Of a stretch of DNA of 64,000 nucleotides, positions 21,568-53,173 are shown in pieces. A model generated the notes under the pieces. That model did no database searches. It saw only the letters and a list, made by a program, of their open reading frames with translations, and had not been told where the DNA came from. The position numbers and the translations under genes were made by a program. Location of the stretch: assembly GCF_006345805.1 (NCBI RefSeq), contig NC_043006.1, positions 27,652,001 through 27,716,000 of the forward strand. Reading direction: 5' to 3'. The stretch is from Octopus sinensis. Lineage: Eukaryota. The first letter of the stretch is position 1; every line of letters begins with the position of its first letter.

Positions 21568-21605
<38 letters not shown>

Positions 21606-23932: not shown

Positions 23933-23972
<40 letters not shown>

Positions 23973-25118: not shown

Positions 25119-25803
25119 TAGAAAAATCAGATGTGGTGTACAAGAGACACAACTGCACTGGTACAATGCTATGATGCAAATGGACGAGGAACCTATGGTA
25201 GAGGTAGACCCTGGAAGACATGGAATGAAGCAGTGAAGTACGATCTTTGAACTTTGAGCCTCACAAAGGCAATAATTAATGACCAAGACGTTTAGCGATG
25301 TGATGTGCTTGAGGGCACCCATCAAGCCAAGTGCACCTGTGTTGGTGGTATATAAAGAACACCTTTCGAATGTTGGGTCTTACAGAGGCGAAGTGGTTTA
25401 CTTCCTTTCACACGTTGGGCCTCACAAAAGCAAAATGGCTGAGTTCCTTCCGAGTGTTGGGTTTCACAGATGCATGACCGAGATTTTGGCACTATGTCAT
25501 GCTTGAGAAAAAGGATCATCAAGCCAAGCAAAATTGCAATCATGGCAGATACCGGTGTCATGCAATTGGCACCTGTGTTAGTGACATGTAAAAGCACTCT
25601 GGTGTCATGCAAATGTTACCTGTGCCAATGGCACATAAAAGCACTCATTACACTCTCAGAGTGGTTGGTGTTAAAAAGGGTATCCAGAAGAAGAAAACCA
25701 TGCCAAATCAGACTGGAGTCTGGTGTAGCCTTCCAGTATGCCAGTCCGATCAAACGATCCAACCCATGCCAGCATGGACAACAGACACTAAATGTTGATG
25801 ATG
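25119..25803 (+). mobile_element. 5'-truncated RTE copy (ORF 3' end plus tail)
   Basis: atcagatgtggtgtacaagag and ggtagaccctggaagacatgg match 29970-30120; shared tail ending aatgttgatgatgat, then (TA)n. Confidence 0.8.
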
Positions 25804-26216
<413 letters not shown>

Positions 26217-30585: not shown

Positions 30586-30593
30586 ATATATAT

Positions 30594-30651
<58 letters not shown>

Positions 30652-30901
30652 GTATATATATATATACATATAGTGTTGGCCAACGGTCAACTCACAGTAA
30701 ATTAAAATTCCATAAATACTATCTGTAATTTCATATTGACTCGAATGGAAAAATGTGTCACTCAAGAAGAACTTCAGTTTGAACTATTTCCATGATGTTT
30801 CATATTTAGATGCTTTTGATAAATCCATTCAGTTTTTAAACATAAGTAAATCTTGGAATTAAATGGTTTTGATTTACCATCAGGTGACTTTTGGCTAACC
30901 C

Positions 30902-30941
<40 letters not shown>

Positions 30942-30947
<6 letters not shown>

Positions 30948-32185
30948 TTGGACAAAATAATGGAAACACCTAGCATCATAATTTTGGAATATCTATAAAA
31001 TCGTCAAAAGCTTGTTTATTTTTATGTTTCTTGATTTATTATTAGTGTTGCTTAATATGTTTTGCTATAATTGCTGTTTCTTTTCAGATATCATCAAAAA
31101 TGGGTAATTAAAATTCATTAGGATGACAGATCTATCGGACTTTCAATGAGGTCAAACTGTTGGTGCTCGTATGGCAGGTGCTAGCATAATGAAAACAGCC
31201 AAAATGTTTGGTGTATCAAGAAGTACTGTCTCAAAAGTAATGACAGCATTTGAGAAAGAGAGAAAAACCTCCTCAACGAAACAAAACTGCAGAAGAAAAC
31301 CTAAACGTTCAGACAGGAACTGACTCTTACGCGAATTATTAGAAAAGATCTCAAGATTACTACAGAGCTTAATGACCACCACAAGAACCCAGTTTCCACA
31401 AAAATTGCTTGCCAGGAGCTGCACAAAGCTGGATTTCGTGGGAGGGCTGCAATCAGAAAACCACTACTTTCAAAAATAAATGTTGCAAAGCATTTAGAAT
31501 GGAGTGAAAACCTACAGAATTATCCCTAGAGCAGTGGAAGAATGTTATTTTCTTGGATGAGTCATCCTTTACCTTATTTCCAACCACTGGCCAAGGATGC
31601 ATGTAGAGACAGCTAAAAGAAGCATTTGATCCAGGCTGCCTTCATCCAACTGTTAAATATGGAGGAGGATCTGTGATGATCTGGGGGCTATATCTTGGGA
31701 ATCCATCAGCCCAATGGCTTTCCTTCATGGCAGAATTAATAGCCAAGACTATTTAAGCATTTTATCTGATCAAATTCATCCTATGGTTGCAGAACTGTTT
31801 CTGGAGGGAAACGCAATCTTTCAGGAAGATAATGCACCAATTCACACAGCTAAAGTTGTTACTGAATGGCATGAGAAACATTCTAGTGAAGTTGAACATC
31901 TTATCTGGCCACCACAGTCCCCAGCACTCAATATTATTGAACATTTACTGTGCATTTTAGAAAAACAAGTAAGGAGTCAATATCCTCCACCATCATCACT
32001 ACAAAAGCTGGAAACTGTTTTAGCTGAAGAATGGACAAAAATTCCTTTGGAAACAATTCAAACTTTGTACGAATCCATACCTTGTAGAATTCAAGCTGTA
32101 ATTACTGCCAAAGGTGGTCGTACCCCATATTAAAATAAATTTGTTTGAAATTTTAAGGTATTTCCATTTTTTCGTCCAACCCCTG
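30942..32185 (+). mobile_element. Full-length decayed Tc1-like transposon
   Basis: TIRs tagggtttggacaaaataatggaaa / tttccattttttcgtccaacccctg; FQEDNAPIH and WPPQSPALNIIE; inserted between microsatellites. Confidence 0.9.
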
Positions 32186-32201
32186 TGTGTGTATGTGTGT
32201 G

Positions 32202-32273
<72 letters not shown>

Positions 32274-32438
32274 TATGGGTGCAGGTGTGGCTGTGTGGTA
32301 AGAAGCTTGCTTCCCAACAACATGGTTCTGAGTTCAGTCCCACTGCATGGCACCTTGAGAAAGTGTCTTCCACTATAGACTTGGGCCAACCAAAGCCTTG
32401 TGAGTGGATCTGGTAGACAGAAACTGAAAGAACCCTGT

Positions 32439-32506
<68 letters not shown>

Positions 32507-32749
32507 GAAAAATACACCAATGAGTGACAGGACATCACCAACAAGTGAATAATACGTAAACACACGAGAGAAAAGTACAGGACAAAATACTAGAAGATAA
32601 CCCCTCATCAGTTGTTGGTTTGCTTATTACTCCTATTTCATGCTTTTAATGAAAATATAGGGAACTTCATATGACAGCAGCATCCACAAATTTTAAAAAT
32701 GTTAAATTCATGAAGAGTTAGACCTTTGAACAAACAAATGTCTAATATA

Positions 32750-32903
32750 TTGGGTTGGTGCATAATTATTGCAGCTTTTTTCAACAAATTTTATTCAACA
32801 AAAACAATAACAACATGTAACAAACACATCTTTAAATGATTATTCCGGAACATATTCACCATCTACTTCAATTAATGCTTCCCATTTGCTTAGCAGATGG
32901 TCA
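32750..32903 (-). mobile_element. Mariner 3' end remnant
   Basis: TIR ttgggttggtgcataattattgc after TA; minus strand encodes SKWEALIEVDGEYVPE stop. Confidence 0.7.
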
Positions 32904-33056
32904 GACCGTCATTTGATGGATTTCTTGCCTGGAGACCGTTATTCTGTCCCTCAAGGTTAAACTAGTTTGACCTATGAGGTCTCCACCACACCCTCCAGAT
33001 TTGAGAACATAGATTAGTTCTTCTACATATATACACACATATATATATATATTAAT

Positions 33057-33272
33057 CTTTTACTCTGTTACTTGTTTCAGTCTAAGAGTGTGGCCATGCT
33101 GTAACACTGCTTTTCAGTTGAAGAAATCAACACCTGGACTTATTCTTTGTAAGCCTGGTGCTTATTCTATTGATATCTTCTGCCGAACCGCTAAGTTACG
33201 GGGACATAAACACACCAACATCAGTTTCTAAGCGAAGGTGGGGGGAACATAGAAATAAATACACACACATTA

Positions 33273-33312
<40 letters not shown>

Positions 33313-33470
33313 GTATAGGACAGACATTTTCAGTTTCCATCAACCAAATCCACTTACATGGCTTTGGTCAGCCCAAGGCTATAGTAGACACATGCCCAAG
33401 GTGCTAGGTAGTGGGACTGAACCCAGAACCATGTAGTTGGGAAGCAAGCTTTTAACACACAGCCACACCC
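33057..33470 (-). mobile_element. Same SINE family, full length
   Basis: Reverse complement of 46422-46822 with internal (TA)n. Confidence 0.82.
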
Positions 33471-33499
33471 ATATATATACACATACACATGAGGCAAGT

Positions 33500-33970
33500 G
33501 ACATTGTTGTCGTGGCCTCATCAGTGGCAGTACCGCATGATTGACACTCGTGCCAGTGCTGCCTGACTGGCTTCCATGCTGGTGGCATGTAAAAGGCACC
33601 ATACAAGCATGGTCGATGCCAGTGCCGGTTGACTGGTCCTGTGCCAGTGGCATGTAGAGAGCATTATTCGAGTGTAGACATTGGCAGTGCCGCAGCACTG
33701 GCTGTGTGCTGGTGGAACATGAACAGCAGCATTCAAGCATGGTCAATGCCAGTACCGCCTGACTGGCAGTACTGTGCCAGCGGCAAAGAAAAAGCATCCA
33801 CTACACTCTCGAAGTGGTTGGCATTAGGAAGAGCATTCAGCTGTAGAAACTTTGCCAGATCGGATTGGATCCTGGTACATACTACTGGCTTGCGAGCCTT
33901 CACTTAAACCATCCACCCCACACCAGCATGGAAAGCAAATGCTAAACGATGATGATGCTGATGATGATGA

Positions 33971-33975
<5 letters not shown>
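33500..33975 (+). mobile_element. RTE 3'-tail copy with 4-5 modules
   Basis: Repeated gtgccagtggca/gtgctggtggca modules, shared tail, (GAT)n, then (TA)n. Confidence 0.8.
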
Positions 33976-34009
<34 letters not shown>

Positions 34010-34011
<2 letters not shown>

Positions 34012-36065
34012 ACGTGAAGGTTTACGAAAATAAACAAAAGACGAAGGCAGGTGGAGTACAAACAAACAAATGTATTAGTATGGCGCTCAGGAATAGAAAT
34101 AGAACAAGTCTTTTACATTTCGAGGCTACGCTCCTCGACAGAAAGATACACAGAAAAGAAACAAGGAGAGAAAAAAATGCATGTAGGAGCTAATGGTCTA
34201 TCATGGCATTCTGACTTCAGGCAGAGGTCAGACGTTAGACGCTAGAGGGATAGTAGGGGAGATAACAGGGTCAAGTGACTTCCAAAACGAAGGTGGCCCC
34301 AACACGAAGGTGCGTGTGTGTATAAGAGAGTATGTATGTGCGTGTGAAAGGGGGCTGGTGGTCTGAACGTGTGTATGTATGTGTGGGTGTGGAGATATGG
34401 AGATATGGGGATGGGTGTGTGGGTGGTGTGTTGTGATATATGTGTATGTATGTTTAGGTGTAAAGATGTGGGGATGGGTGTGTGGGCGGTGTGCTGTGGG
34501 TCGTGTGTTGTGATGTGATGTGTAATGTCGTATGGTGTAGTGTAGTGTGGTGTGATGTTGTGGGGAGGTGGGGGTGAGAGTGGGGAAAGCCCATGTGGGG
34601 TGTGGGTTCGGCTGGGGGTTGGGGTAGAGTGAGGGTTGTGGGGAGAGTGAGAGGGGGAGAGAAGAGAGCGGAGGGGAGGGGAGGAGAAGGAGGGGCGTGG
34701 TAGGGAGAGGAGGAGGAGGAGAGAAAGAGAAGGAGGGAAAGGGAGAAGGGGAGTGAGGGAGCAGAGAGAAAGAGAGAAGGGGAAGAGGGAAGAAGAAAGA
34801 AGAAGAGGGAAGAAGGGAAAGAAGGGAAGAGGAGGGAAAGAGAGTAGGGGTGAAAAGATGAAGGACTGAAGAGAAGTAGGAGTCGGGGGGAGGTTAGATG
34901 AAAAGGGGGAAGAGTTGAGCCCAAATGGTGTAAAAGAGCGAAGAGAGAAGATTAATCCCTGTTCACGGCACAAGCGGTAATCCGGATGGCCTCTGTGCAA
35001 GGACAATCCGAACACAGACAGGTGTTGCAAGGAGTGACCAGTGGAGCAGAAATGGCGTGAGACTGGTGTGTCATTGGCGAGGCGGATATCTTGGAGGTGT
35101 TCCGCGAACCGGTCAGCCAAGCGGCGTCCCATTTGTCCGATGTACAGGGAATGGCAGAGGGAGCAGGAGATGCAATAGATGATATTGCTGGAGGTGCAGG
35201 TGAAGGAGTCGATGATGCGATAGGGTCAATGATGGGTGCCGGTGAGGAGGGTGGTGTTGGAGAGGTAAGGGCAAGTGTGGCAATGTGGGCGGGAGCAGGG
35301 GAACGAGCCAGGTTGGGAGGTAGGGTCAGGGAAGAAGCTGTGAATCAAGAAGTCTCGTAGGTTATGGGCTCGTTTGAAGGAGGGGAGGGGTCGGTTAGGG
35401 AAGAGGTGTGAAGTGGACGAGTCGGACTGGAGATGCCGGAAAGCTCGAAGAATGGTGCGTTGGAGAGGTAGGGTGGTGGGGTGGTAAGTGAGGGGAAAAG
35501 GGAGGCGGTAGACTGCAGGGCGGGTTCGGGGGGGGGAGCAGATGCACGATCTACGGAACGTGCTCTGGCAAGGGCGGTGTGGATAGTGGTGAGGGGGTAT
35601 CCACGTAGGATGAAGTGGCGAGCCATGAGTTGAGACAGTCTCAAAGTCATGGTCGTCATTACAGAGCCTACGTAGATGGAGGAATTGGGAATAGGGGATG
35701 GAAAGCTTGGTGTGTTTGGGGTGGGAGGAAGAGAAGTTTAGGTATGAGTGTGAGTCTGTGTGTTTGTAGTGAATGGAGGTGGTAAGAGTGGAGTGATGAA
35801 TGCTGACCAAAACGTCGAGGAAGGAGACAGAGGTGTTGGAGATAGTACAGGTGAAGTGGAGGGCAGGACGGAAGGATTGAACGAAAGAGAGGAAGGAGTC
35901 TAGATGTTCACGGGAGAGTGAGGTGGCACCGATAATGTCATCAATGTAACTACCGTATAGTTCAGGAGTGGGACCAGTGAAACTAGAGAATATTTGGGCC
36001 TCAACATAGCCAAAGAACAGGTTTGCATAGTTGGGGCCCATTCGCATTCCCATGGCCACTCCCAA
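34010..36065 (-). mobile_element. 5'-truncated Penelope-like element (RT plus GIY-YIG endonuclease, Neptune-like linker) with 3' pseudo-LTR
   Basis: [20 protein letters not shown] (35937-35948), SFLDV, YKHTDSHSYL..SSHP..SIPYSQFL; linker CSRPHCHTC; GIY-YIG NIIYCISCSLCHSLYIGQMGRRLADRFAEH. Frameshifted. Both ends abut (TA)n. Confidence 0.92.
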
Positions 36066-36342
36066 TATACATATATATATGCACATATATATATATATAT
36101 ATATATATATGCATATATATATATATATATATACATATATATGTATATACAAATATATATAGATATATATATATATACATATATATATAAATAAAAATCC
36201 ATATGTACATATACACATATATACACACATATATATACATATATACACATATATACACATATACACACATATATACATCTATATATACAGATACACATAC
36301 ACGCACACACACATATATATACAAACACAGACAATGTATTCA

Positions 36343-36376
<34 letters not shown>

Positions 36377-36428
36377 CATATACATATATATACATACACA
36401 TATATATACATACATATATATACACACA
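36066..36428. repeat. (TA)n/(CA)n microsatellite tract
   Basis: Directly visible; separates the Penelope 5' break from a SINE tail. Confidence 0.9.
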
Positions 36429-36623
36429 TTCTTTTATTCTTTTCAATGCTTCAGTCATTCGATCATGGCTATGCTCCAGCATCACCTTTACTCAAGCAAA
36501 TCAACCCCAGAACTAATTCTTTGTAAGCCTAGAATTTATTCTATCAGTCTCTTTTGCCGAACCACTGAGTTACGGGGACGCAAACACATCGGCTCTCAAG
36601 GGATATTGGGGGGACAAACACAG

Positions 36624-36677
<54 letters not shown>

Positions 36678-36803
36678 CACAGGTTTCTTTCAGTTTCTGT
36701 CTACCAACTCTACTCACAAGGTTTTGAGGTGCCATGCACCGAGATTGAACTGAGAGCCATGTGGTTCATAAGCAAGCTACATCCCACACAGCCACTCCTG
36801 TGC
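36429..36803 (-). mobile_element. Same SINE family
   Basis: Head, internal (CA)n(TA)n and tail all recognisable. Confidence 0.8.
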
Positions 36804-37454
36804 GTGTATATATATATATATATTTATATAACAAAGTGGAGTTGTAAGGTACCACACATATACACAAGTAACCATTACTTAAATTTAATCTTAAAAAACT
36901 TTGCATGTGCATAGTTTTTCCTTCCCCAATTGTAAACACTGCTTAAGTAACAAATTTTTAATGCAAGTAAGTGACAAATTTCTTTTTACACATAAAACTG
37001 CACACAGAACACACTAAATAGTGACATGAAATTACCAGAAGCTGTATTAACGTATTACTGCATATCTTATTCAACAATTTAAAACTAAGAGAAATACTCA
37101 AAACAATTATTTCATTGTTTTTTTTTTTTAATTCTATATACAAAAAAAAACTTTGCTTCTTCATGCACATTAGAGACTTATAGCATTAAGTTGACAGAAA
37201 ACAAATCTGAACATAAACATTTCAATAGATAGTAAGAGAAATGGCTTGTTTTCTTCTAAATAAAGTCAATTTATCAAGTAATGCCAACTTACTGATGAAG
37301 TGTATCATCTTATTTGGTCATGTTAAAATTGCAAATAACAAAAAAATTTACAAAAACACTCAGAAATAAACACGATATAAGCATAGTGAAGAATATGCAA
37401 ACCTGTCTTGACATTGAGACAAACAATTGTTAAAGACAGATGAAGGTGACATAC

Positions 37455-37540
37455 CCCAGAGGAGACTGCTGGCGCTCCTGATACTTTGCAAGATGGTCAC
37501 CCACTAATGCTTGGTCAGCATCATCAATCAACGAGTCAGA
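37455..37540 (-). CDS. ATP6V0A1: V-ATPase V0 subunit a, alternative linker exon B (SDSLIDDADQALVGDHLAKYQERQQSPL-G)
   Basis: Acceptor cttcatttgcttaatactag, 86 nt from phase 0 to phase 2, donor GG|gtatgt. Acidic linker ending in PLG, in frame with the next exon. Confidence 0.8.
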
Positions 37541-38185
37541 CTAGTATTAAGCAAATGAAGAAATTGACATAAATTTTCTTCATAATCATTTAAGATGTTA
37601 ACTGGTTGATAAACACACATTTAGTCCATACATAATGATTAGATTTACAGTCTGAAACATGCTTTTTTTTTTCTTTCCTTTTTTTGTTTGTAAAGCTACA
37701 CAAAATTACACACAACAGGAGAGAAGAATCCTCAAAATGAGAATTAAAATGAGGATTTATGGGCTGAAGAGAGGGAGGAAAAAAGAAGAGAAAAATGAGA
37801 TGGATAAATACAAAAGTATACAAATCAGAAAAAGCTATAAACTTATGATGTTCAAAGAATTCTTCTTAATACACAAGTTTTTAAACATAATTAACAAAAA
37901 AATTGATTCATTCTACCTCCAGCAACAGCAACAATATATTCAAATAGATAAATGAAAGGCAAAAATATGTCAATCATAAAAATATATACAAGAAATGAAA
38001 TCTGAAAAAAGAAAAGTTAAATGAAATTTCAAAAATTTTTTTCTATTGAGAAGGACATTTTATTAGAGATAAAACCGCATTAAATACATTATATAGAAAA
38101 GTTGCAGTATTCTAACAATGTACAATACCTTTTTTTTGTAAGTAATAATGTAAAAGTAAATCTATAATTGAAGATGTTTGAATCT

Positions 38186-38227
<42 letters not shown>

Positions 38228-38910
38228 TAAATATATTACTAATATTTAAAGCAATTTTATCTTCCTGCAGCACAAACAGGTTCAATAAATGAGCCAATGT
38301 TCAATTCTAAAATACTAAATCTAATTAATGATTACTGGGTATCTAATCACTCTCCTCCCTAAGTAGGCTTAGTGGGGTCACCAGTTTAGTCACTAATGAT
38401 TTGACCATGCAGCAAGTTGTACTGGATTAATGATCTGCAGTGGAACTTAGTCTGTGACCAGGTTGCAGTTGGTGGGATGAAAGTTTTGACACCAAATAAT
38501 ATTTAAGTGAGGTTAACAGTTTTTGTGTGTTTTTGAATGGCTAAAATATGTCATCCACACTATAATTGCTTTAGTCTCAGCACTTAGTCTCAGATCAACT
38601 CATTTGCTAGGAAAGTGCATCTCAGAAAATAATGATTTGCTTTGTCAGCAACATAACATGACAACATTTTCTGCAAAGTTGGTTAACAATTTTACAAAGA
38701 ACATATGTCAGTCCTTCATTTTCATGCCCACATGAGAATGTTGATGAGAAATAAAAAGATGATTCTGTTTTAGCATTTCTATGAGAAAACAAAAACACAA
38801 GGAGAACTCAAATTCAGCACTACAGATTAATGAGATATTAATTTTACAGTGTTATGACATTGCTTATGACATTGAAATATTCCAAGCTAATGTTACAAAC
38901 ACCTGCTTAA

Positions 38911-39126
38911 CCCTTTAGCATTTAAACTAGCCATATCTAACCCAAATATCCCACCTGTTTTATGTTCAGTCTGGCCAGACACAGCCTCTCTAACACTACA
39001 ATGTCATTGTAAAAATAAATAATTACATCATTGAAATCTTGAAGCTACGAAGTAATGCATCATGAATTCAAAATAATGTGAATAAAAAAGTATTACATTT
39101 GGCACAGTAATCTGAATGCTAAAGGG
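38911..39126. mobile_element. piggyBac-type MITE
   Basis: TIRs ccctttagcatt / aatgctaaaggg; TTAA on the left and gtaa on the right. Confidence 0.75.
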
Positions 39127-42100
39127 GTAAAGCTAGGTTGACTGAGTGGTTGAAATTAAAACTCTTAGTCAAGAATCCAGCATAAAACCAATGACAGAAT
39201 AATGTTGTCTTCTCAGTTGATTGATCAATACTTTATTATACTTTGCCATTCTTAGGTTTTTCAGCATACATTCTATTGATAATTATTATCATTAGTATCA
39301 AGGTTTAATTGTTTCAGTAGGAACAAAGCATGTGTAGTTGCTCCTAATACACATCATCTTCAAGCAAGATTGTCACCTGTGATGAAATCACATTGTTGTG
39401 TGACTCTTAACCATCATGGTTTTCCTTAACTGAGGATTACTGAGTGGGCTCAACGTTGCAACCTATCAGAATTCTTGTCAAATATAAAATACATCAATTA
39501 CTTATAGTAGTGAATTGTACTCTTTTGATACTTATTAATAGTTAGGTAGATTTAGTCATGTAAAGACATCGTGTAGTACAACAAATGTCATGAGCCAATG
39601 ACCTTTCATCAACAGGCATGTATCAATTTACTTAACCAGCTGCAGCTTTCATAATCAATGTCGATTACTTGATATTGATAGTAATTATAGAGGAAATAGT
39701 TCCTACTAAGATGGTAACACTACTACTAAAACTGAAACCTCTGTAAGAATATAAAGAAGTTAATATGAAGCAGTTATATTTTTTCAGTGGTTAGAACACA
39801 ATTGCAGTTAACAAATATTAGAAATTGAGTGATTTATTCAGTAATTTTAAGTATTTGCATAGTTTAGTATAATCAACCAATTTAGCAATGGAAGTTCCAC
39901 AAAAAACGAGAGAAGGAAAATGAAGTTAGAATATAATGTCACCAGAAAATAGCTTCTGTTAATGTTATTAGAAGACATAAAAATATGTATAAAATAATTT
40001 GTTTACCATAATTTTATTGATTGAATGTTTAAATGTGTGCATTTTTGTTACCATGATTATAATTTTGGAGGCTATTAACTTCATATCTTAATATTTATAT
40101 TTTTTTAATATCTATTTTAAGATTTGTAGTCAAGAAGAACAGGCTACACTTATGTTGCCTTCAAAACTGCATATTGTCTGTAAGTCAATGACTGCATCAG
40201 AATGTGGATTGGAAAAAGATTTAAAATATATTATGTTCTAGGGAAGAAAACTTAGCTGTAATAGTTAGTGTAGGGCTTGGATGAAGGACATAGCATATCT
40301 GACAAGAGGAGATGGGTATGTTAAACTGGTTTGGAGTGAATGATATGCAAGTAGCTGGCTCTGAGCAGCAGAGGCCATTGTAGTAGTAATAGAAAAGGCA
40401 GAGTGAGTTGGCGATTGAGTCTCTACAAATATTTATTTATGGAAACATACACACATAAATGTAGATATATATTCACCCACCAATATATGTATGCATGTAT
40501 GTATATATTATCTGAAGAATGTCAAGAGTGTTATGTAAACATCAGAATAATCACAAAACTATAGTTGATATTCTGAATGTATTTAATATGCACATTTAGA
40601 GTTGTTAATGTACAATAACCATTACATAATACTACCCTCTTCAGTCAGTATTTCAAAATATTATATACACACACTGATAGACAGATAGAAAATGTAGATA
40701 TTGAAAATTATTATGTCTGTAAAATTAAAAAGACATAGTTTTGGTACAATCTTATGATTCTTAAACTATACAAAAGGAAAATTATTTATAGATTTTCTTC
40801 AGCTTATTTAATAATAAGGAGTAAGTCTAAGGTAAAAGATTAAATTTTATATTATATGTATAATGTAAATGCTTACTTAATAATTCTGCAACAAGTAACA
40901 GATATAATTGGTTGCAAGTATTAATAATAACGTTGTTCAAACTAAGAATTCTTAGGACTTATCCACACTTTCACTTTTGTTTTACTGCCCATAAAAGCAT
41001 ATAGCATTTGAAACATCAATATAAATGTTTTATTCAGTAGATTATACTCAATTCTTTACTTTCTTATCTTTATATACTCCATTTGAACATATATATCACT
41101 TACATTCACTTACATAAATTGCATGAATCTTACATATTTGAAAGAGCCTGAAAATGGTTTGAGCATAGTCCCTCCTTCACCGGTAACTTATTTTCTTACT
41201 TATCAAATACTGGAATTGCTTACATATTTAATTAATGAAGAACACTGCTTTTAGATAACAGCTGGATTTAGTCACACTTGACATTTATGGAGTTCTCTTC
41301 AAACAAGGCTTGAAAAAAAAAGGACTGAATGATTGAAAATGAAGTCCAAGTTAATATGAAAATGAACTATAAATATATAGTGGATTTCTCATATGTTTTT
41401 TGAAACCTGTACTTTAAAAGCTTAATGAGAGAAGGAAGAGTATGAAGGTCATGATTGGCTACAGGACCTCCATGACCAGTGAGGAGTGAAAGATATCCTC
41501 AAACTAAAGCTCTGACCCAATCGTTTATAACAAAGTGAAGTCCACTTTAACAGGACCTCTATTACAAGAGAGGGATGAACCAGACCCAATTACTTACAAC
41601 AAAGTAGAGTTCACTATATAGCAAGCAAATGACAAAAAAAGTTTCACTGAGTACATGCTCTAAGGAAACATTAAATATCTCTAAGGTGAGTACAAAAAAT
41701 TCAACATAATTAAATCATGTAATGTTCATGTCTTTTCCCTATAAATGAAATGAAATTACTTGGTAGCTTATTTTCTTTGTCTCCCAAACTTTGGTGTCAT
41801 TCACCAACAGCTAGAACATTCACAGGTAACAAATAATCTTTCTAAATAAATTTTATCAGACATTATACACTAAGTTCGGCCTGAAAAGAGAAACAGACCT
41901 ACTGACAGGACTAAAACTTTGTACCTTTCACTTGCCAGGTGACTGAGTCACTGCTTTGTAGATGCAATCAGTAATAAGGTTATAACAAGTCTGCTAAAAT
42001 AATTATTTAAATCTGTTAATGAAGTTCCAAAGTAAAGTATTTACCCAACTGATGTGATAATTGCAAGGAGTCCTTTATCAGCAGAAACCTTACTCAAATG

Positions 42101-42372
42101 AATAACTAAGCATCTTTCATTGAACCGGTAACCATGTTAAATAATATTGATCATATAAACATTGGATCAAGCCACATGACACTAAATACACACACATACA
42201 TACACACACACAAAACATGTTACAATGATTTCCTAGCAAGCGATATGGTTTGAGTCACATCAGTGGGCTTGTTTCTCTTTTTTGTCACACATTGCTGTTT
42301 ATGATGTCTAATAGTAGATATAAATTTAAGTCTTACCAGACTACTTATAATGTCAAATAGTGTGTGTGTGTG

Positions 42373-42447
<75 letters not shown>

Positions 42448-43779
42448 GTGTCTTACCATTAAATCATGATCTTTCTTTTTGCTTTCATTAATTTCTTATG
42501 TTAAGAATTATTCCTATATATAGTCTTTGATAATAGAATAAGCCCTAATGTTTAAACAACAAGCAAGTGGTAAGAAAGGCAATAGAAATAATGTACAAGT
42601 ACAACATCCTTTGCTATTGCACTATTGATAATAACCAAAGAGAATAAGGAAAATAAGACACAGCTCCACTTTCATTTACTAATGCTTGCTTTTGATTTTT
42701 GGAATTGCTTTTTTTTTTTTCTAGGGGAAACTTTAGATAATAATCTAAACATAAAATCAGTTCCACTTAAAACCATTTTTTGAAGAATTTTTTTAAAACA
42801 GCTATTCATAAAACAGTAGTCATAGTGAATCTAAATACATGCATAAATTAATTTATATTTAAAAAAAACAAACATCATTTCTGCTTTCCAGCTCAAGTTA
42901 TTGTGAGACTAAATTTAATATTTTGATTTGGGAAAAAATTATGAAAACATAAGATGGACTGACAGAATTTTTATAACATCAAGCAATATATTTTGCATTA
43001 TCGTTCAATTGTTACCCTAAATCCTGAAAATTCCATCTCCTCATGTCATGTCTTCGACCAGCCTAACCCTGATCTCTCTCTTCCCACTCTCTCGCAGTTC
43101 TGTTAACCACTTGCTTCTCCCAACACCTCACCTCTTCTCCCCCCACCCCACCCTATATATATACTAGCTCATTCAGATTCCCCTACCTCATATTTTAATA
43201 TCTTGCTACATGGAGTAGAAATCAGAAGATATTCAGATAAGCAACTTGGTTTTCCAAGCTAGCACACACATCAAAAACTTCTTTTACAGTGCAAATTGCA
43301 ATTACTTTATTATTTCATTTCATTATCTATCTATGTAAACAGAAGTTTTGCCTTCTGTACCATATGTTTAGAGAAAAAACTTAAGATCCCTACACTCAAT
43401 CCAACTCTCTCTCTCTCTCTCTTTCACCCTTCTCACTCCCTTTCACGCACATTTATTATTAATATTTATTCATTCATTTACCTAATTTTGTCACACACTG
43501 GCTCACCAAAAACTGTTGGTTATAACTCTAGTTAAGAATGCAAACACCCAATTCTATCTCATTATTATCATTATTATTATTATTACTATTCTTCCACACT
43601 GGCAGCCAGAGTGTTTGCTGTTTTGCGTTGTGCCTGCCCTTCCCACCACCAACATCTGTACCGGAAGTCTTTATCCTTCGACCTCTATCAGATGTCTTTC
43701 CCCTGAAAACCTCCAAAGGTTAAATGCTCCCCATCTCCTATGCAATGTAGTGATTATGTAGCACATGAAATGATGGTGT

Positions 43780-44660
43780 AGTGTATGCAGTTTGAAGGCT
43801 ATTGTATATTTATAAGTTCTGCCAAATGCGAGCTTTCTTTTCAGATACATGATGCTGCTCTCCCACCCATCACAGATCCTCACGGGTCCACACCTTCCAT
43901 ACCCTCAGAGTTCGCACACAATGTTGGCACATTGGAAGGTAGGTCCGGTAAGATTGTTGAACGGAGACATGTAGATTTGTGCTGCATCCAAGAAGAAATG
44001 TGGAGAGGAAGTTCTGTTAGGTTCCCCACCAGCAAAGAACATAGGTATAAGATTTTCTGGGTAGGGAACACTGATGAGGTTGGAGATGTGGGTATACTTC
44101 TTGCAGAGAAATGGGTGGATAAGGTAATCGAGATATTCAAGAGTCCATGATAGAATACTGAAGCTTAGATTAAGGCTGCAACATGGATTAGCAACCATTA
44201 TCTTCGCTTATGCCCCTCAGCAAGGGCTACCTGATGAACAGAAAGACCGATTTTATGACTACCTTGTTGACAAATGACAGTGACCTTCGCTTTGTGGCTG
44301 GCAACATCAATGGACATGTTGCACTATATGCAGAGGTTTTCCACTATATGCTGTGGTTTTGGGTCCCGTAATGATGGGGAAAACAGGCTGCTGGAGTTCT
44401 GCAATGCAAATGATCTCATGGTTTGTAATAATAACTTCAGGAAACCTGCCATTCACCTTTTTACCTAAAGGTCTGCACGACACACTAGTCAAATTGACTA
44501 CATCAAAGCCAGGAAACAGGAAAGATGGCTGCTCATAGATGCCAAAACATTCCCAGGTGAAAAATACACACCTCAAGACACATTAGTAGGTAGCACCAAT
44601 ATGATCAGGACTAAATGGATGCACAGAAGATAACAAGCATGGAAAGGAAGAGTCAGGAAG
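43780..44660 (+). mobile_element. Degraded RTE-type LINE 5' part (APE domain)
   Basis: HNVGTLEGRS..VDLCCIQE..KIFWVGN..VGILLAEKWVDKVIE parallels 27200-27450 and has several frameshifts. Confidence 0.85.
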
Positions 44661-44944
44661 CTTCTAGCAACGTTATTTTCTGCATCCCCTGTGCTTTCTG
44701 CCAATCTCTGTACATTGGTATATATATACATTATATACCTATAACGTATATATACTTCCTATGCTTTACATTACAAATTTTAATAATTACTGGTATTTTT
44801 ATATTTTTATATATTATATGTGTAAAGCATAATGTGTTATACATGTATGTATATTGTTATAATGGCTTTTAAAACAAATACACATAATATAATGTCTAAA
44901 AATTGATGAATACCACCTCTTGATCCCCTCAATTTTCTTCTGGC

Positions 44945-45159
44945 TAAATATATATATATATATATATATAGTATGTATATACATGACATGTACATAATAT
45001 ATATATGTTGTGTATATATATATATATATATATACATGACATGTATATAATATATGTTGTGTATATATATATATATATATATAATATATATACATGACAT
45101 GTATATAATATATATATGTTGTGTATATATATACATGACATGTATATTATATATATATG

Positions 45160-45199
<40 letters not shown>

Positions 45200-45912
45200 C
45201 ATATATTATATTATATATCTGTACAAAGGCTGCGCCAGGCCCCTGTTGAACCGTCCAACCCATGCTAGCATGGAAAATGGACGTTAAACGATGATGATGA
45301 TGATGATGTATTATATACATATATAGTATGTGTATATATATATATATATAATATATCATATATACATTACATGTATGTAATATATATAGTATATATATAT
45401 TATATGTATTAATATATATAGCATATATATATATGTGTGTGTTGAATTCGTGGTAATTAGTCTATATTTTCGATATGGATTATATATAGGTTATATATGG
45501 ATTATATACTTATATTTTTTCATTTATACTTTAATTATTTAAAAGTATTATTTTTATATTTTAAAATTTTGATTTTTTAGATTGGAAGTCCACCTGAAGA
45601 TTGTCGATCAAGACAAGAAACGATTGTAGTGGCGGTTTTTTTGACTATTTATTAAATTTTATGTATTGATTAAGTCTTTCCTTGTTTGTTTTGCAAAATA
45701 GTGGTTTTGTCTCAAATAATATTTTATATAGTATATATATAACATATCTGTATAATGTATATATATATATATATAGTATATATATATCATATCTGTATAA
45801 TGTATATATATATTATATATATATATATATATATAATATATTATATATATAACATATCTGTATAATGTATATATTATATATATAACATATCTTTATAATG
45901 TATATATATATG

Positions 45913-45952
<40 letters not shown>

Positions 45953-45964
45953 CATATCTTTATA

Positions 45965-46019
<55 letters not shown>

Positions 46020-46028
46020 ATCTTTATA

Positions 46029-46081
<53 letters not shown>

Positions 46082-46092
46082 ATCTTATAATG

Positions 46093-46142
<50 letters not shown>

Positions 46143-46176
46143 TATATATATAGATATATATATATATATAATATAT

Positions 46177-46218
<42 letters not shown>

Positions 46219-46420
46219 ATTATATCTTTATAATGTATATATATATATATATATAATATATATATTATTATATATATATATATATATATATTATGCATCT
46301 GTATAATATACATATATAATATATATATTATATATATAGTATATATAATATATTATATGTAGAAATTATATTTTATTTATATATATATAGTATTTATAAT
46401 ATATAGTATTCATATTATAT
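44945..46420. repeat. Compound (TA)n / minisatellite tract containing short insertions
   Basis: Units tacatgacatgt..gttgtg(TA)n (about 4 copies) and aacatatct(g/t)tataatg(TA)n (about 8 copies). Confidence 0.9.
45590..45632 (+). ncRNA. Minimal type I hammerhead ribozyme motif
   Basis: ccac-CTGAAGA-ttgtc(gatcaa)gacaa-GAAA-cgattg-TA^gtgg: stem I ccac/gtgg, stem II ttgtc/gacaa, intact CUGANGA and GAAA core, GUA cleavage triplet, near-palindromic stem III. Confidence 0.78.
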
Positions 46421-46421
46421 A

Positions 46422-46822
46422 GGCACAGGAGTGGCTGTGTGGTAAGTAGCTTGCTTACCAACCACATGGTTCCAGGTTCAGTCCCACTACATGCCATCCT
46501 GGGCAAGTGTCTCCTACTATAGCCTTGAGCCAACCAAAGCCTTGTGAGTGGATTTGGCAGACGGATACTGAATGAAGCCTATCATATATATGTATATATA
46601 TGTGTATGTGTGTTTGTATGTCTGTGTTTGTCCCCCCATTATTGCTTGACAACCGATGCTGGTGTGTTTATCTCTCCGTAACTTAGCAGTTTAGCAAAAG
46701 AGACTGATAGAATAAGTACTAGGTTTACTAACAATAAGTCCCAGGGTCGATTTGCCTGACTAAAGGCAGTGCTCCAGCATGGCTGCAGTCAAATGACTGA
46801 AACAAGTAAAAGAGTAAAAGAC
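46422..46822 (+). mobile_element. Full-length tRNA-derived SINE with internal microsatellite
   Basis: Head ggcacaggagtggctgtgtggt..ggttcagtccc, core gggcaagtgtct..ctactatagcc, (TA)/(TG) block, tail ending gactgaaacaagtaaaagag. Confidence 0.88.
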
Positions 46823-47093
46823 TAAATATATATATATAGTACAAATATTCTAAAATTATAAACATAATTATATTATATATATATTATATACTACATATAG
46901 TACATATATATATATAGTACAAATATTCTAAAATTATAAACATAATTATATTATATATATATTATATACTACATATAGTACATATATATATATATATATA
47001 TATGAAGAATAAAATATTTTGAATGACACAACAATGCACTATAAAACACAGAATGGACTATAACGATTGTTGTAATTTAATCATCTATAGTCT

Positions 47094-47132
47094 GATATGA
47101 TATTTCGGCATAAATTTCCTTCTTCAGATATC
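47094..47132 (-). ncRNA. Minimal hammerhead-like motif
   Basis: Minus strand gatat-CTGAAGA-a-gg(aaatttatg)cc-GAAA-ta-TC^atatc; 5-bp stem I; stem II shortened. Confidence 0.55.
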
Positions 47133-47139
47133 CCTACAA

Positions 47140-47540
47140 ATGGATTTTATGGGACTCTGTAGAAAAGCTCCAGCTTTGTGAAGAGTGGGTTTTACAACAG
47201 GATAACGACTCTAAGTACATGGCGAAGTCTACCAAAAAATGGATTGTCGATCACAATATAAAACTACTAGAATGACCAAGCCAGTCACCTGACTTGAACC
47301 CCATTGAAAATTTGTGGCATTATTTGAAAATTAAAATTCATTCAAGAGCCCCAACGTGCATTGCAGATTTGAAGAAAATTTGTCAAGAAGAATGGGAATA
47401 AATTCCTTAAGAAACATGCGAGTCATTGATTAAAAACTACAAGAGATTGGTTGAAATGGAACTGAATAATGGTTATGCTACAAAGTATTAAATAAGAATT
47501 ATCAGTTATTTATATTCTGTACAAATACTTTTTTCACCCC
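47140..47540 (+). mobile_element. Tc1-like 3' fragment
   Basis: [35 protein letters not shown] stop, followed by a TIR-like end. Confidence 0.85.
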
Positions 47541-47852
47541 TAAATATTTATAATTGTATATAAATTCCTTAGTAACTATAATTTATTAGTTTCTTTTGCA
47601 TATTCTTAGTTTATGTATGTATATGCAAATATAGTATTGGTATATCCAATTTATGTTCATTAGAAATTTGATAAATAAATAATTTTGACATGTACGAATA
47701 TTTATTTCCCCCCACATTATATATAGTACATATTTCCCCCATACATGTGTGTATATATTATATATGTACATATGTGTGTATATATGTATGTACATATGTG
47801 TGTGTGTATATATATGTATGTACAAATGTGTGTGTGTGTGTATATATATACT

Positions 47853-47995
47853 ACACTCATGGAGTGGTTGGCGTTAGGATCCAGCTGTAGAAACTGCCAG
47901 ATCAGACTGGAGCCTGGTGCAGCCACCTGGCTTCCCAGACCCTGGTCGAACCGTCCAACCCATGCTAGCATGGAAAATAGACATTAAACGATGAT
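47853..47995 (+). mobile_element. RTE 3'-tail copy
   Basis: ctacactcatggagtggttggcgttagga..gacattaaacgatgat. A shorter copy lies at 45220-45305. Confidence 0.8.
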
Positions 47996-48000
47996 ATTAT

Positions 48001-48314
48001 TTTCTTGTATTTGTTTCAATCATCTTGACTGTGGCCATGCTGGAGCACTGGCTTTAGTCAAACAAATCGATCCCAAGACTTACTCTTTGTCAGCCTAGAA
48101 CTTATTTGATTGGTGTCTTCTTCCGAACTGCTAATTTATGGGGATGTAAATACACCAACTTTGGTTGTCAAGTGACGGGGGGGGGACAAGCACAGATACA
48201 CTGACACACGCACACACACATATATGTATGTGCGTGTGTGTGTGTGCATATATATGTGTGTGTATATATATATATATATATATGCACACACACACATATA
48301 TATATGCACCCGCG

Positions 48315-48348
<34 letters not shown>

Positions 48349-48510
48349 CATACACAATGGGTTTCTTTCAGTTTCCGTCTACCAAATCCACTCACAAGGC
48401 TTTGGTTGGCTTGAGGCTACAGTAGAAGACACTTGCCCAACGTGCTATACAGTGGGACTTAAGCCGATACTATGTGGTTAGTATGCAAGCTACTTAACAT
48501 GCACCCACTC
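48001..48510 (-). mobile_element. Same SINE family
   Basis: Full architecture with about 160 bp of internal mixed microsatellite. Confidence 0.8.
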
Positions 48511-49579
48511 TGGTAACAATATATATATATATATATATATAGTGTGTGTGTGTGTGTGTGTGTATTAAACATTTAAAATTGATTGGGCCTTCCATGACAA
48601 GTTTTACTTCATCAACTTTTTCAACCAGTCGAATAAGTCAATAAAGAGAATCTTGTATTTACTTGAATGACTTCTCCAATGTGACCAATTAGAAAATATT
48701 TTAAACTACCTAGTCTAATTACATGTCTTGCTGAAAGGAACAAATAAGCAGAATTCATACATGGATGTGAAAATATTAAGAATCATTAAAAAAAAAACTT
48801 TTAAAATCATATATAAAATATAATAGACAATATTCAATAAGATTATAATACCCTTCAGAAAAACAAAACAAAAATATATACTTTTTGTTAGGTTAAAAAT
48901 AGACAACATCCTGTCTTTTTTTAAATAATATGCATCAAGACTTATCTATTTAAATAACTTCAAATGACCAAAAAAATAAAAAAGCAAGAAGCACATGAAT
49001 AAATATCAAAGATACAATATTATATATTCACAACAATAATAGACAAAACACAACATCAAACAACAAATAAATTCTACAACTAATGCTCTACAATAGTGCT
49101 GCTAATACTACTACAGCCACCAACACCACAACCACCATCAATGCTTAAGCAATCTATATATAACTTTTGCATTACATCATAAAATAGCACATTTGACAGT
49201 ATATTAAAAGGGACTGGAGGACAGGATAGACTATCATAGAAACTCAATAACTGCGACAAATGTGGTTTCAAAAGACACAAATTTCCAAGTAGAACATTCA
49301 TTGATATCTAAATATGTTATACCATTCACCAATATGATTATTCACATGATGTCTTCAGTGTAACAATGTACCAAGTTGATGCTAAAACTAAAAATAGCAG
49401 CTGCTGTTGTATCTCTTCAAATTTTCAGAGTTAAAGGATTTTAAAAATTATGATTGTTAAAAATGTAATACAATAAGACAAACAAGAAATAATGACGAGA
49501 GACTTGATACTGAACTAGAACTTAGTGTAAACTGAATGCATCAAATGGAAAACACAATAGTAAATACAGGCTCAGTACA

Positions 49580-49925
49580 TAAAGGGCTGATCTCTAATTG
49601 TGGAGGGAGACTGTGGAAGACATGGGACAAAGTGGTGAGAAAGGAGCTTCAAATGTTGGGCCTCACTGAGGAGATGACAAAAACCAAGGCTTCTGGCAAT
49701 TTGCTGTGCTTGAGAAGACATGTCAACCTAAGTAAAATTGTAGCCATCCATACAGGTATGTATTTTACAACTATGTCCCCCACTCCCTCTCTCAGTTGAG
49801 GTCTTTGTCTTGCAGGCTCACAGATGCTGGTGTCATGTAAAAGACACCTGTTTTGGTGTCATGAAAAAAGCACCTGTACCAGTGTCACATAGAGAAGCCC
49901 CAATGCTGGTGCCACAGAAAAATAA
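49580..49925 (+). mobile_element. Old RTE 3' fragment
   Basis: ..KTWDKVVRKELQMLGLTEEMTK resembles 30100-30180; followed by repeated gtgtcatgtaaaa..cacctg modules. Confidence 0.6.
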
Positions 49926-50079
49926 CTTCCAGATATAAATTTAAAATTTATTTTATGTAAAGAGTAACTGATACTAATTACTTAAATCATGTTTTTTGTT
50001 TTTTTCATCCATCCATGCATCCATCTTTTCTGCTCACTATTCCTGGAAGGCTTGTGGTGCAGACACTTCCTCCATAGGG

Positions 50080-50370
50080 TTCTATTAAAAGCAACCACCA
50101 TTAGACTTTCTTTTATGATAAAATATAATATTCAGACCCCTGGGACTCATAAGATCAAAGCTTAACCTGATTTCCATGGTATATAAATTGAGATTATAAT
50201 GCTCCCCCTTGAATGGGATGCAATACAATGCAAAGTTAATTTCCCAACTATTGTTGGAACTCAATGAAGTGTCTCGCTTAAGAACACAATGCACTACCTG
50301 GTCCAGGAATCAAAATCAAAACCTTACAATTGTAAGTGCAACACCTTAACCACTAGGTCATGCACCTTCA
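50080..50370 (-). mobile_element. tRNA-derived SINE with CORE-like segment
   Basis: Minus strand ggtgcatgacctagtggttaaggtg..ttgattcctgg..gtgttcttaagcgagacactt. Confidence 0.6.
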
Positions 50371-53063
50371 CTAAACTTTAAAAAAAGAAAAAAAACACCC
50401 GCTTTTTAATTAGTTAAAAAAAATTATAAATAATAAATTACTTAATTTAAAGACAAAAATTCTTAATTGCAGCACTAGATGTTAATCAAAGAGAAGAAAG
50501 AGATGTTAAACATATATTCCTTAGTAAAGTATTTTAACATTTTAAAATATAAATTTAGAATAACTAGAATTTTCAGAATTATCTTTGTATAATTTTATTG
50601 TTTCTAAATGAAAGAAAGATGGGATGAGATTGAACAGCTTATAGCAAGCAATTCAGCTGAGCTGAGTTGCAAGTTCTTACAATTATATTTGAAATATTGA
50701 TTTCTTAACAAAGCTCTAGGTCAAATTTCTTTATAAAGAAGGTTGTATAATTAATTGAACCAACTTCAATATATCATAAGTAATGGTTCTATCCAGATGT
50801 ATTTGCATTCAGAAAAAACAAATATTCTAGAATATGTAAAGCATTTAGTCTGGTGCTGCAATATTTATGCCTATTCCATCTTCCTTTATAAGAAATATGA
50901 GGCTGATTTGGAAATGAACAAAACAGTTATACACAAGAAATATTGGTCTTCATAAGATACTAATTAAAACAATATTTTTGTACATGTTACTCATGAAGAG
51001 AAAACAAAATGATGAAAATGAAATGTAAAGATAAATGTTGTGAGATGAGAAGACGAAAAATCAACACTGCTATTGTTAATATAAGATACTATTTTCAAAT
51101 GACAGCGAAGAGCAACAGTTTTTTCAAACAGACTTCTACTTCTCACAAAAAATCTCTAAATCCAATCCAGTTGGAAACTAAACTACTTATAAGAAATCAC
51201 AGTTGCCTCTTGAGAGCTGAGACCTAATCTAAATCAAAATGTTATTAAACCTTTTCATACCAACCTACCTGAAACTGTTCTCTAGTTTTATGGTACAACC
51301 TCCATGTTTTAAAGTGATCTTAACTAAAACTTTTCTTCAAAATTTCATGTCACTTTATATTCCAAACACCAGCAGAATAATGACAATTATTTTACTGAAT
51401 TTTTCAATGTTTTCAAAACTAACTGAAACAAGTAATTGTATGTCAACAAAAATAAGGTAACAAAAGGTTAATCTAATTGAGCAGCAGCCAAAATAATTAT
51501 GTAACATATGCATACACCCTTCACTGACCCTCACTTAAAACAAAAACAGAAAACATTCAGTCCACTATTTGCATATTTTGTTATTCTGTCACTAGTTTTG
51601 GTCACTGGACTGTGGTTATGCTGAAGCAAGGCTTCTAATATATAATTGATTCTACTGATCCCAGTTTTAATCAACTGGTATATATTTTATCAACTTTGGA
51701 AGGTTGAGAGGCAACATAAACTCGGGAAACATTTGAACTCTGAACATTAAAGAACATAACCAAATACCTTAAGACATATTATCTAATGTTCTACAGTTAT
51801 GTGATCTCTTTGCCATATCCAAGGTTTGACAATCTATACAGCAATTTTACAGAATATGTTTATGAGATGATTTTAAATATTAATGTTTACATCAAAAACA
51901 GGAACATCATCCTCATCATCATTATCATCATCCTCTTCTAATATTCACTTTCCATGCTAGCAAACATTGAATAAATCATCATGGTCCAAGTTAGTTTTTA
52001 TTCAGAATTACTGCCTTATAGATAAGTTGGAGGAGTACATCTTGCTCACATATTCCATTTTTGGCATAGTTTCTATAACTGAATATCTTTTTTATTACCA
52101 ATCACTTTACAAAGTGTACTGGGTGTATTTTATCATGGCACCAACACTAGAGAGGTAGTCATGCACTTTACAAGGCTAGAGAGTCCTCTTGACTCTAAAC
52201 TATCTTTGTTCCCCATCCACTTTACAGAGAATACAGGATACATTTTGTGGTACAAACTCTAGCAGTCACCTTGTCCCCTGCAAGACTAAGAAATTTTCCT
52301 TACTTTATGATGTCTTCATTTTTTCAAGGTAAAAGTGACTGAGAATGTGAATAAAAGAGAGTGGCAACCAAGATAGTCAAAAAGAAAGATTGAATGTAAT
52401 GGAATAAACAGAGTGAGAGGATGGTAGAGGAAAGAGTGATAGAAAAGAGAGACAATGATATCAGATGTTGGTTATTGGTAAGGAGATTGAATAGAAAACA
52501 GTATGAGCTGCAAGATGAGATAGTAATAAAGATAGTTTCTTGCAAGAGAGAGAGAGAGATGGGGAGGATAGCCAAAGACATACAGGTATTGTGAATGGTA
52601 ACTGTCAATGAGGCATCACATGGAATAGAGAAATGACTTTTCTGTGGTTTTTTAACAAGGCTCTATAACAATTTTAAGTTAATATACCCTTAATAATTAT
52701 TATAATCTATTATAATCAATTTACACATTCCCGATACATTTTATATAAACTAATCTTATTAACTCCAAGGACGATGAAAAGTCATCTATGGTACACTTTC
52801 AACACAAAAATTTAAGACATCAAAGTATCATAAAAGAATCTAGTCCAGCTCTCTGATCACTGCAAAATCTAACCTGCCCTAAAATCCAGGGAAATGGCAA
52901 ATAGAAATAAATATTTGATATGGTTCAAGTACAACCCGGGTACTCTGCATAAAAGCATGTGCTACATAGGATTTAATAAATGTATCAAAGTAATGATGTT
53001 AACGTTGATATATAAAACAATAAGGCAAATATTCAAAATGTAATAAAATGTTCCATTTCTCAC

Positions 53064-53173
53064 CCTAATTTTAATGCCAGGCCAACTTGATAAAAAGTTT
53101 CATCCATCAGTAGCATAGTTGACTCCTCATTATTGCCAGAATCATGCAAATTCAGATTGTGATTGGATTCAGC
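53064..53173 (-). CDS. ATP6V0A1: V-ATPase V0 subunit a, alternative linker exon A (AESNHNLNLHDSGNNEESTMLLMDETFYQVGLALKL-G), candidate mutually exclusive exon
   Basis: Acceptor caattttactag, 110 nt open frame from phase 0 to phase 2, donor GG|gtgaga. Ends in LKLG, which joins FLAGV of the 18282 exon like the conserved LG-FVAGV junction of a subunits. Not in the ORF track. Confidence 0.82.

Follow-up and report, generated by a model that had tools for sequence, protein, structure and literature searches.

Two frame-incompatible candidate exons for the acidic linker of V-ATPase subunit a in one Octopus sinensis gene

Subunit a sets the location and regulation of the V-ATPase, and in yeast and mammals its N-terminal cytosolic domain holds information for targeting and regulation. 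The 64,000-nucleotide (nt) stretch of Octopus sinensis DNA analysed here (contig NC_043006.1, positions 27,652,001 to 27,716,000; hereafter the window, numbered from its first letter) carries on its minus strand the middle exons of a gene for V-ATPase subunit a. The question raised by this locus is whether the variable linker of that domain is written there twice, in two exons of which only one can be used at a time. A first-pass annotation, made from the letters alone, had proposed this for two short stretches, here called exon A and exon B, that lie upstream of a single exon beginning with the conserved FLAGVI segment. We consider it probable, at roughly 80%, that the linker of this one gene can be encoded by either of two real, frame-incompatible exons, a reading drawn from sequence and from the comparison with homologous loci. 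The coordinates of all features are collected in Table 1.

That the gene belongs to the V-ATPase subunit a family is clear from homology, which extends over the N-terminal cytosolic domain and the first membrane helices. A tblastn search with an approximate human a1 sequence returned seven exons, collinear with the query, between 18281 and 2828. They correspond to human a1 residues 170-479 with 63-88% identity per exon, and the splice borders were set by reading the sequence. Over the spliced 310 residues the identity to this human a1 sequence is 78%; PF01496 (V_ATPase_I) is present in the closest database proteins, and the best match in a representative protein library, which holds no cephalopod member, is 75% identical. 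The exon at 18282 is preceded by tttattcag and begins G TTC TTG GCT, its first base completing a Gly codon, and its protein is 100% identical to P0067 from Logan run SRR11869384. A contig of the same run (L001) aligns to window positions 19609-18088 with 85% DNA identity over 1.5 kb of intron and the FLAGVI exon; together with the identical exon protein, this indicates that L001 comes from a related species. The N-terminal exons lie outside the window, as none of the open reading frames (ORFs) at 53174-64000 resembles them (0 found) and the upstream-exon peptides (..ELTELKHILRKTQxFF[DE]E) gave noise only when compared with the window by tblastn. A further subunit a exon was likewise not found between A and B (37541..53063) by tblastn with the same approximate human a1 query.

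Reading of the minus strand bore out the coordinates, lengths, phases, GG ends and splice sites proposed for A and B in the first-pass annotation, their join at 18282 and their spacing of 15.5 kb. Exon A follows ttttactag and runs from GCTGAA to AAATTAGG before the donor gtgaga, with TTA GG as its last codons and a coding content of AESNHNLNLHDSGNNEESTMLLMDETFYQVGLALKL plus GG. Exon B follows taatactag and runs from TCTGAC to CCTCTGGG before the donor gtatgt, with CTG GG as its last codons and a coding content of SDSLIDDADQALVGDHLAKYQERQQSPL plus GG. Both are bordered by AG and GT, are 3n+2 nt long, end in GG and stand in frame with the 18282 exon; the single FLAGVI exon lies downstream of both, and both align to the linker of homologues. 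They presumably start in phase 0, since the upstream exon, which lies outside the window, ends in that phase in all seven homologous loci that contain it. The earlier observation that A and B share no obvious sequence holds for the DNA, where no similarity was seen; in the protein, 8 of 38 aligned positions are identical. Among unrelated candidates, each exon also ranks next after the other, which could be explained by the shared acidic composition and the terminal LG. The acceptors of A and B are weak and similar (..tactag), that of A having a poor pyrimidine tract (atatcaattttactag); those of the constitutive exons are pyrimidine-rich. Regulated exons typically have weak acceptors, and the acceptors of A and B fit such exons.

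The reading frame limits how the two exons can be combined. With A alone or B alone, reading is open into the FLAGVI exon. With both, the frame shifts, as had been predicted, and a stop is reached four codons into B (...LKLGLTR, then stop), while skipping of both leads to a stop in the next exon (VLGWCYSS, then stop). As both or neither give an early stop, a productive mRNA carries exactly one of A and B. This frame rule is common to all homologous loci examined, in which the upstream exon ends FF[DE]E, written GA[GA]GAG and followed by gt, in phase 0 (7 of the 7 foreign loci containing it) and the first base of the FVAGV exon is the last one of a Gly codon, which puts its start in phase 2 (8 of 8 foreign loci). 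A and B show the features of a frame-enforced cluster, namely the same protein segment, shared flanking exons, equal phase and lengths that are not multiples of three. A suggested alternative junction from the upstream exon to 41880 has no coding potential in that frame: the acceptor-like cag at that position is followed by GCC GAA CTT AGT GTA TAA, with a stop after five codons.

Splice-like borders around an open frame are common in the window. On the minus strand of positions 18283-64000 we counted 988 stretches that are bordered by AG and GT, open in frame and 3n+2 nt long, 57 of which end in GG. Mechanical criteria alone are no better than chance, and the case rests on homology. Profiles were built from foreign exons only and searched against all six frames of the window, which contain 2766 stop-to-stop ORFs. 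The A-type profile ranked the exon A ORF first of 2766, with an expectation value (E) of 6e-4 and the next ORF at about 1; with five foreign exons in the profile it was again first, at E 7e-3. The B-type profile also ranked the exon B ORF first of 2766, at E 1.3-2.3, barely above the runner-up. The support for B consists of this rank, of a global alignment anchored at the exon borders and of a shuffle test. Among 926 mechanical candidate exons aligned in this way, exon A reached 43.0 when compared with the five A exons of other loci, whereas no unrelated candidate went beyond 3.4. Exon B, with exactly the borders first proposed, was the best of the 926 against four foreign B exons with a score of 31.5, followed by two shorter versions of itself, by exon A (6.2) and by the best unrelated candidate (6.0). 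None of 5000 composition-preserving shuffles reached the observed score for A, and none of 5000 did so for B (z about 9 and 5, respectively). Exon A is identical to the L009 exon, of equal length, at 16 of 37 residues, and exon B to the L002 B exon at 14 of 32. The sequences of A and B mark them as homologues of linker exons that are conserved independently. In each, the frame is still open and the splice sites agree with the consensus, within about 35 kb of intron that holds mobile-element insertions; this is hard to explain unless both are used.

The foreign loci that carry this comparison (L007-L014) are eight invertebrate FVAGV-exon fragments, read on into the adjoining intron, in large contigs from metagenome assemblies of the ENA, taken with 10 kb on each side. 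The ENA assemblies concerned are ERZ26052287, ERZ25069863, ERZ26273219, ERZ25069866, ERZ26052378, ERZ26222911 and ERZ25067556. Their downstream exon structure is that of the window wherever the flank is present, which is so in all of them except L013, where the contig ends. Five of these loci contain A-type exons of 107-122 nt, all 3n+2 and with GT donors, that follow the pattern AEHHH.QAMHEPG..(D/E)(T/H)(V/L)G(L/M)LG(E/D)E....GQAL(K/R)LG; an AG acceptor precedes every A-type start except that of L012 at 8830. In one of them, L012, two A-type exons stand in tandem in one gene (ADLRYDTQAMSDQVL..HKLG at 7788-7897 and AEHHHQAMADPAMADE..LRLG at 8830-8936), and these may form a different alternative-linker pair; the latter has no AG at its AE start (aacatgg, then GCC) and may use an internal cag. 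Protein searches with short queries returned fragments of fewer than 190 amino acids only and no A- or B-containing protein from this or a close species, and a full-length chimeric query with human ends had only mammals among its top matches.

B-type exons of 86-95 nt, with the pattern S[DE]HS[VI]L[ED]DAQQALAD..QLG (S[DE]HSVLEDAQQALAD..QLG), were found in L007, L011 and L013 and in a further contig, L002, at the same position and in the same phase as the window exon. The motif common to exon B and the foreign B exons is S[DE](H)S.[LI][ED]DA.QAL..D...LG, although only 9-14 of about 30 residues are identical between them. L002 (Ga0099808_1042625, 2303 nt), the only contig obtained from a scan of Joint Genome Institute (JGI) metagenomes, has an open frame that starts in the linker, ends at the stop codon and shares 85% identity with the window subunit a over 316 residues. 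As this frame is continuous, the contig derives from a spliced mRNA; it starts within the intron upstream of the B exon, and its linker SDHSVLEDAQQALADDDTLLVSEHQRPPLQLG follows intron-like sequence full of stops, the last letters of which are ctctgactcag. In L007 and L013 the order is upstream exon, A-like exon, B exon, FVAGV exon, which is the layout of the window. The A-like exon of these two loci (L007 6152-6282 and L013 3502-3632) is 131 nt long, begins AELLRFD.., ends ..LLNDD.L..L...LG and has a gtgaga donor in both, with 24 of 44 residues identical. Alignment by blastn is confined to constitutive exons between L007 and L013, and to these and simple repeats when the foreign loci are compared with the window.

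Several points weigh against the reading that A and B are both working linkers of this gene. The upstream exon is outside the window, the acceptor really used by A cannot be fixed from it, and in-frame AGs at 53125 and 53122 offer possible alternative acceptors within exon A. The foreign genomes are contigs from metagenome assemblies, and the B profile values quoted above are weak. L009, L010, L012 and L014 show no recognisable B exon and the candidate in L008 is doubtful, so the A/B pair is not universal. The first-pass annotation went on to state that one gene makes two a-subunit isoforms; the part of this claim that stands is the presence of alternative linker exons, for which the evidence is comparative, and it is from there that we infer the use of both exons in this gene. 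Its proposed division into a neural and a general isoform is only an analogy, and its suggestion that the two would stand in for the vertebrate paralogues a1-a4 is neither favoured nor disfavoured by the loci compared here.

The same observations allow other explanations to be weighed. Only the canonical exon A might be used, B being a relic in decay or an open frame that has splice-like borders by chance. That mechanical candidates are so common, that the B profile values are weak and that most foreign A-type loci have no recognisable B exon would all agree with this; but B comes out on top of both the ORFs and the candidate exons against four B-type sequences, at a score that no shuffle reaches, its frame and both of its splice sites are intact in an intron invaded by mobile elements, and a B-type exon is used in the spliced contig L002. 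We regard such a relic as improbable. The converse, in which only B is used and A is the relic of an ancestral canonical exon, appears very improbable to us: in L002 the form expressed by a relative does have a B-type linker, and the pyrimidine tract before A is poor, yet A keeps an open 110-nt frame between AG and GTGAGA, shares 16 of 37 residues with the equal-length L009 exon and has a profile E of 6e-4, and the acceptor of B (taatactag) is equally weak.

Both exons might also be spliced, with one of them serving mainly to produce unproductive transcripts that include both and so tune expression. The stop after four codons of B would make such transcripts available, but the amino acid sequences of both types are conserved across genomes whose introns do not align by blastn, and conservation at the protein level is expected of coding use and not of a stop-carrying cassette; little credence can be given to this possibility. 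We therefore keep to the reading of two alternative linker exons. In this mechanism the acidic linker between ...KTQxFF[DE]E and GFLAGVI would come from either A or B, the cell would pick one of them by regulated splicing, and mRNAs with both or neither would be removed by nonsense-mediated decay. The gene would then make two subunit a isoforms that differ only in a linker of 29 or 37 residues.

The C. elegans gene unc-32 belongs to the same family and, like the window gene, has a cluster of alternative exons in the part encoding the N-terminal cytosolic domain, exon 4 of which we take to encode exactly this linker. Its exons 4a, 4b and 4c, of 155, 107 and 122 nt, are mutually exclusive and all 3n+2 long (PMC3627589, Table 1), so that only single inclusion keeps the frame, as with A and B. 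The choice among them is tissue-specific, neurons using 4b under the control of UNC-75 (PMC3627589, PMC3585155). The two systems differ in scale, with three exons separated by introns of a few hundred bases in unc-32 and two exons 15.5 kb apart in the window. They also differ in what can be said of regulators: UNC-75 and ASD-1/FOX-1 are known for unc-32, whereas RBFOX (TGCATG) and CELF-like or GU-rich motifs are not enriched over expectation near the exons studied here. A TGCATG does occur within exon A at matching offsets in the window (53149-53144) and in L009 (exon A offset 25), where it arises from codons for (L/M)H(D/E), and further copies 108-288 nt downstream of several alternative exons are not above expectation. 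Besides, unc-32 has a second cluster, 7a/7b.

In mammalian ATP6V0A1, the variable piece lies between ..QFFDE and MADPDLLEE..RLG, FVAGVI, which is the same junction as that of the window linker, and a comparison of isoform sequences showed that the a1 isoforms differ there by AELHHQQ between QFFDE and MADPDLLEE. Together with the unc-32 exons, this insert at the start of the linker upholds the earlier statement that the linker is a known site of alternative splicing. Poea-Guyon et al., in 2006, reportedly linked this splicing of a1 to neuronal expression and to sorting to nerve terminals. The mammalian arrangement differs in that splicing adds or omits a short insert in an otherwise constant linker, whereas two complete linkers would swap in the window gene; the mammalian isoforms examined contain no B-type sequence. 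Invertebrate A-type exons, including that of the window, start with AE(H/S/L).H.. and run collinear with the mammalian AELHHQQ plus linker (13 of 37 and 16 of 38 identities). All foreign A-type exons have an in-frame internal cag acceptor directly after AEHHH.Q (L008 7312, L009 6314, L010 9197, L012 8848 and 7812, L014 7521). Their use would drop 7-10 residues and keep the length at 3n+2, at a boundary that matches the mammalian AELHHQQ segment. Exon A of the window has no AG at the equivalent boundary, the two internal AGs mentioned above being its first in frame, and a mammalian-type optional segment of seven residues was not found in it. The collinearity of the A-type with AELHHQQ plus linker, and the foreign cag at the same boundary, point to A as the canonical and B as an additional alternative. 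Exon A would thus represent the ancient canonical 'AE..' form, present in most relatives examined, and exon B a second, independently conserved form.

Table 1. Features of the window and linker exons of the foreign loci, in the numbering of each sequence.
Sequence	Feature	Positions	Strand	Basis
Window	Candidate linker exon A, 110 nt, presumed phase 0 to phase 2, AESNHNLNLHDSGNNEESTMLLMDETFYQVGLALKLG	53064..53173	-	sequence read and homology
Window	Candidate linker exon B, 86 nt, presumed phase 0 to phase 2, SDSLIDDADQALVGDHLAKYQERQQSPLG	37455..37540	-	sequence read and homology
Window	Intron between A and B, 15.5 kb	37541..53063	-	exon borders
Window	Intron between B and FLAGVI exon, 19.2 kb	18283..37454	-	exon borders
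Window	Constitutive exon joined by A or B; begins with third base of Gly codon, then FLAGVI	18156..18282	-	tblastn and splice-site reading
Window	Constitutive exon GDHVYKSVFIVFFQGDQLKSRVRKICE(G)	16033..16115	-	tblastn and splice-site reading
Window	Constitutive exon, starts (G)	12223..12316	-	tblastn and splice-site reading
Window	Constitutive exon VLGQTQDHRHRVLVAAAKNIKVWFIKVRKIKAIYHTLNMFNLDVTQKCLIAECWCPVADLDRIQQALRRGT	11910..12122	-	tblastn and splice-site reading
Window	Constitutive exon, ends (A)	10418..10568	-	tblastn and splice-site reading
Window	Constitutive exon, starts (A)	6040..6179	-	tblastn and splice-site reading
Window	Constitutive exon, ends (P); gene runs past window start	2808..2950	-	tblastn and splice-site reading
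Window	Non-long-terminal-repeat (non-LTR) retrotransposon in B-FLAGVI intron, antisense to gene	27220-29689	+	Exo_endo_phos, RVT_1 and PHD domains in ORFs
Window	DDE/mariner-type transposase relic in B-FLAGVI intron	31714-32133	+	Pfam (DDE_3/Transposase_1)
Window	DDE/mariner-type transposase relic	9512-9904	+	Pfam (DDE_3/Transposase_1)
Window	Mariner-like transposase relic	55949-54936	-	mariner-like translation; piece tested without Pfam match
L008	A-type exon	7288-7400		
L009	A-type exon	6293-6402		
L010	A-type exon	9176-9282		
L012	A-type exon	8830-8936		
L012	A-type exon, second copy	7788-7897		
L014	A-type exon	7491-7612		
L007	B-type exon	8511-8605		
L011	B-type exon	1419-1507		
L013	B-type exon	9378-9463		
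L002	B-type exon, joined directly to FVAGVI exon			

Some other linker-like sequences were seen at these loci. Between A and B, at 42093-42019 on the minus strand, an ORF ..FLLIKDSLQLSHQLG, with gtaaat after it, is similar to the final part of the AELLRFD..LLNDDSLATLSHHLG exon of 131 nt in L007 and L013; as a third exon (LLIKDSLQLSHQLG) it was rejected, having an E of 1.6, no phase-compatible acceptor and a donor in phase 1, and it may represent the decayed remains of a third linker exon or be due to chance. In L008, a stretch of 74 nt at 9535-9608, between the A exon and the FVAGV exon, is a candidate for a third kind of linker exon (VEAGGASSVSSTELTQRPGNATNLG, 3n+2, ag/gtaaaa); it recalls the linker ..QEGGGASDSLTRALIQEE.. 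of P0297 and occurs in one genome only. In L010, the first 30 codons of the FVAGV exon recur twice in partial and slightly degenerate form, at 9479-9568 and 9903-9992, just upstream of the real exon (10025-10150); a local tandem duplication could account for these copies, or they could be pseudo-exons. In the Manduca sexta contig L015, which extends only 1.6 kb upstream of its FVAGV exon, no linker exon was found. Two different subunit a loci come from one ENA sample: L012, where the linker exons are all A-type (19x coverage), and L013, which has the A-like and B exons (7x); they could be paralogues or derive from different organisms, and alternative exons and paralogues may coexist in relatives.

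The mobile elements listed in Table 1 all lie outside the intron between A and B. The non-LTR retrotransposon sits within a GC-rich block at about 24000-36000, which has 38-45% GC against about 32% elsewhere, a strong GC skew and many TA/CA microsatellite runs.

The kind of arrangement proposed here is already known from unc-32 exon 4a-c and from the mammalian a1 insert, and the A/B pair adds a case to it. As annotation it is useful and unsurprising, since automated gene models supported by RNA would probably list both isoforms. Choosing one exon over the other would give the N-terminal cytosolic domain a different acidic linker. If unc-32 and mammalian a1 are a guide, cell type probably governs this choice, and the targeting or regulation of the pump may change with it. 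As a doubtful but possible extension, we suggest that A/B is an ancient linker switch of animal subunit a, older than the split between the lineage of the window and the foreign invertebrates, and maybe of common origin with unc-32 exon 4 and the insect-type linker (..SDSLTRALIQEE.., P0297). If this were true, the choice between neuronal and general pumps by a linker exon would be older than much of the diversification of bilaterians, and the AELHHQQ insert would be all that vertebrates retained of it once they had gained paralogues. Splice variants at this linker separate neuronal from other pumps in worm and mammal. Overall, if this large-brained invertebrate has such a switch and other invertebrates conserve it, it would offer a testable handle on isoform-specific targeting of the pump, and it would suggest an old switch and not a peculiarity of nematodes.

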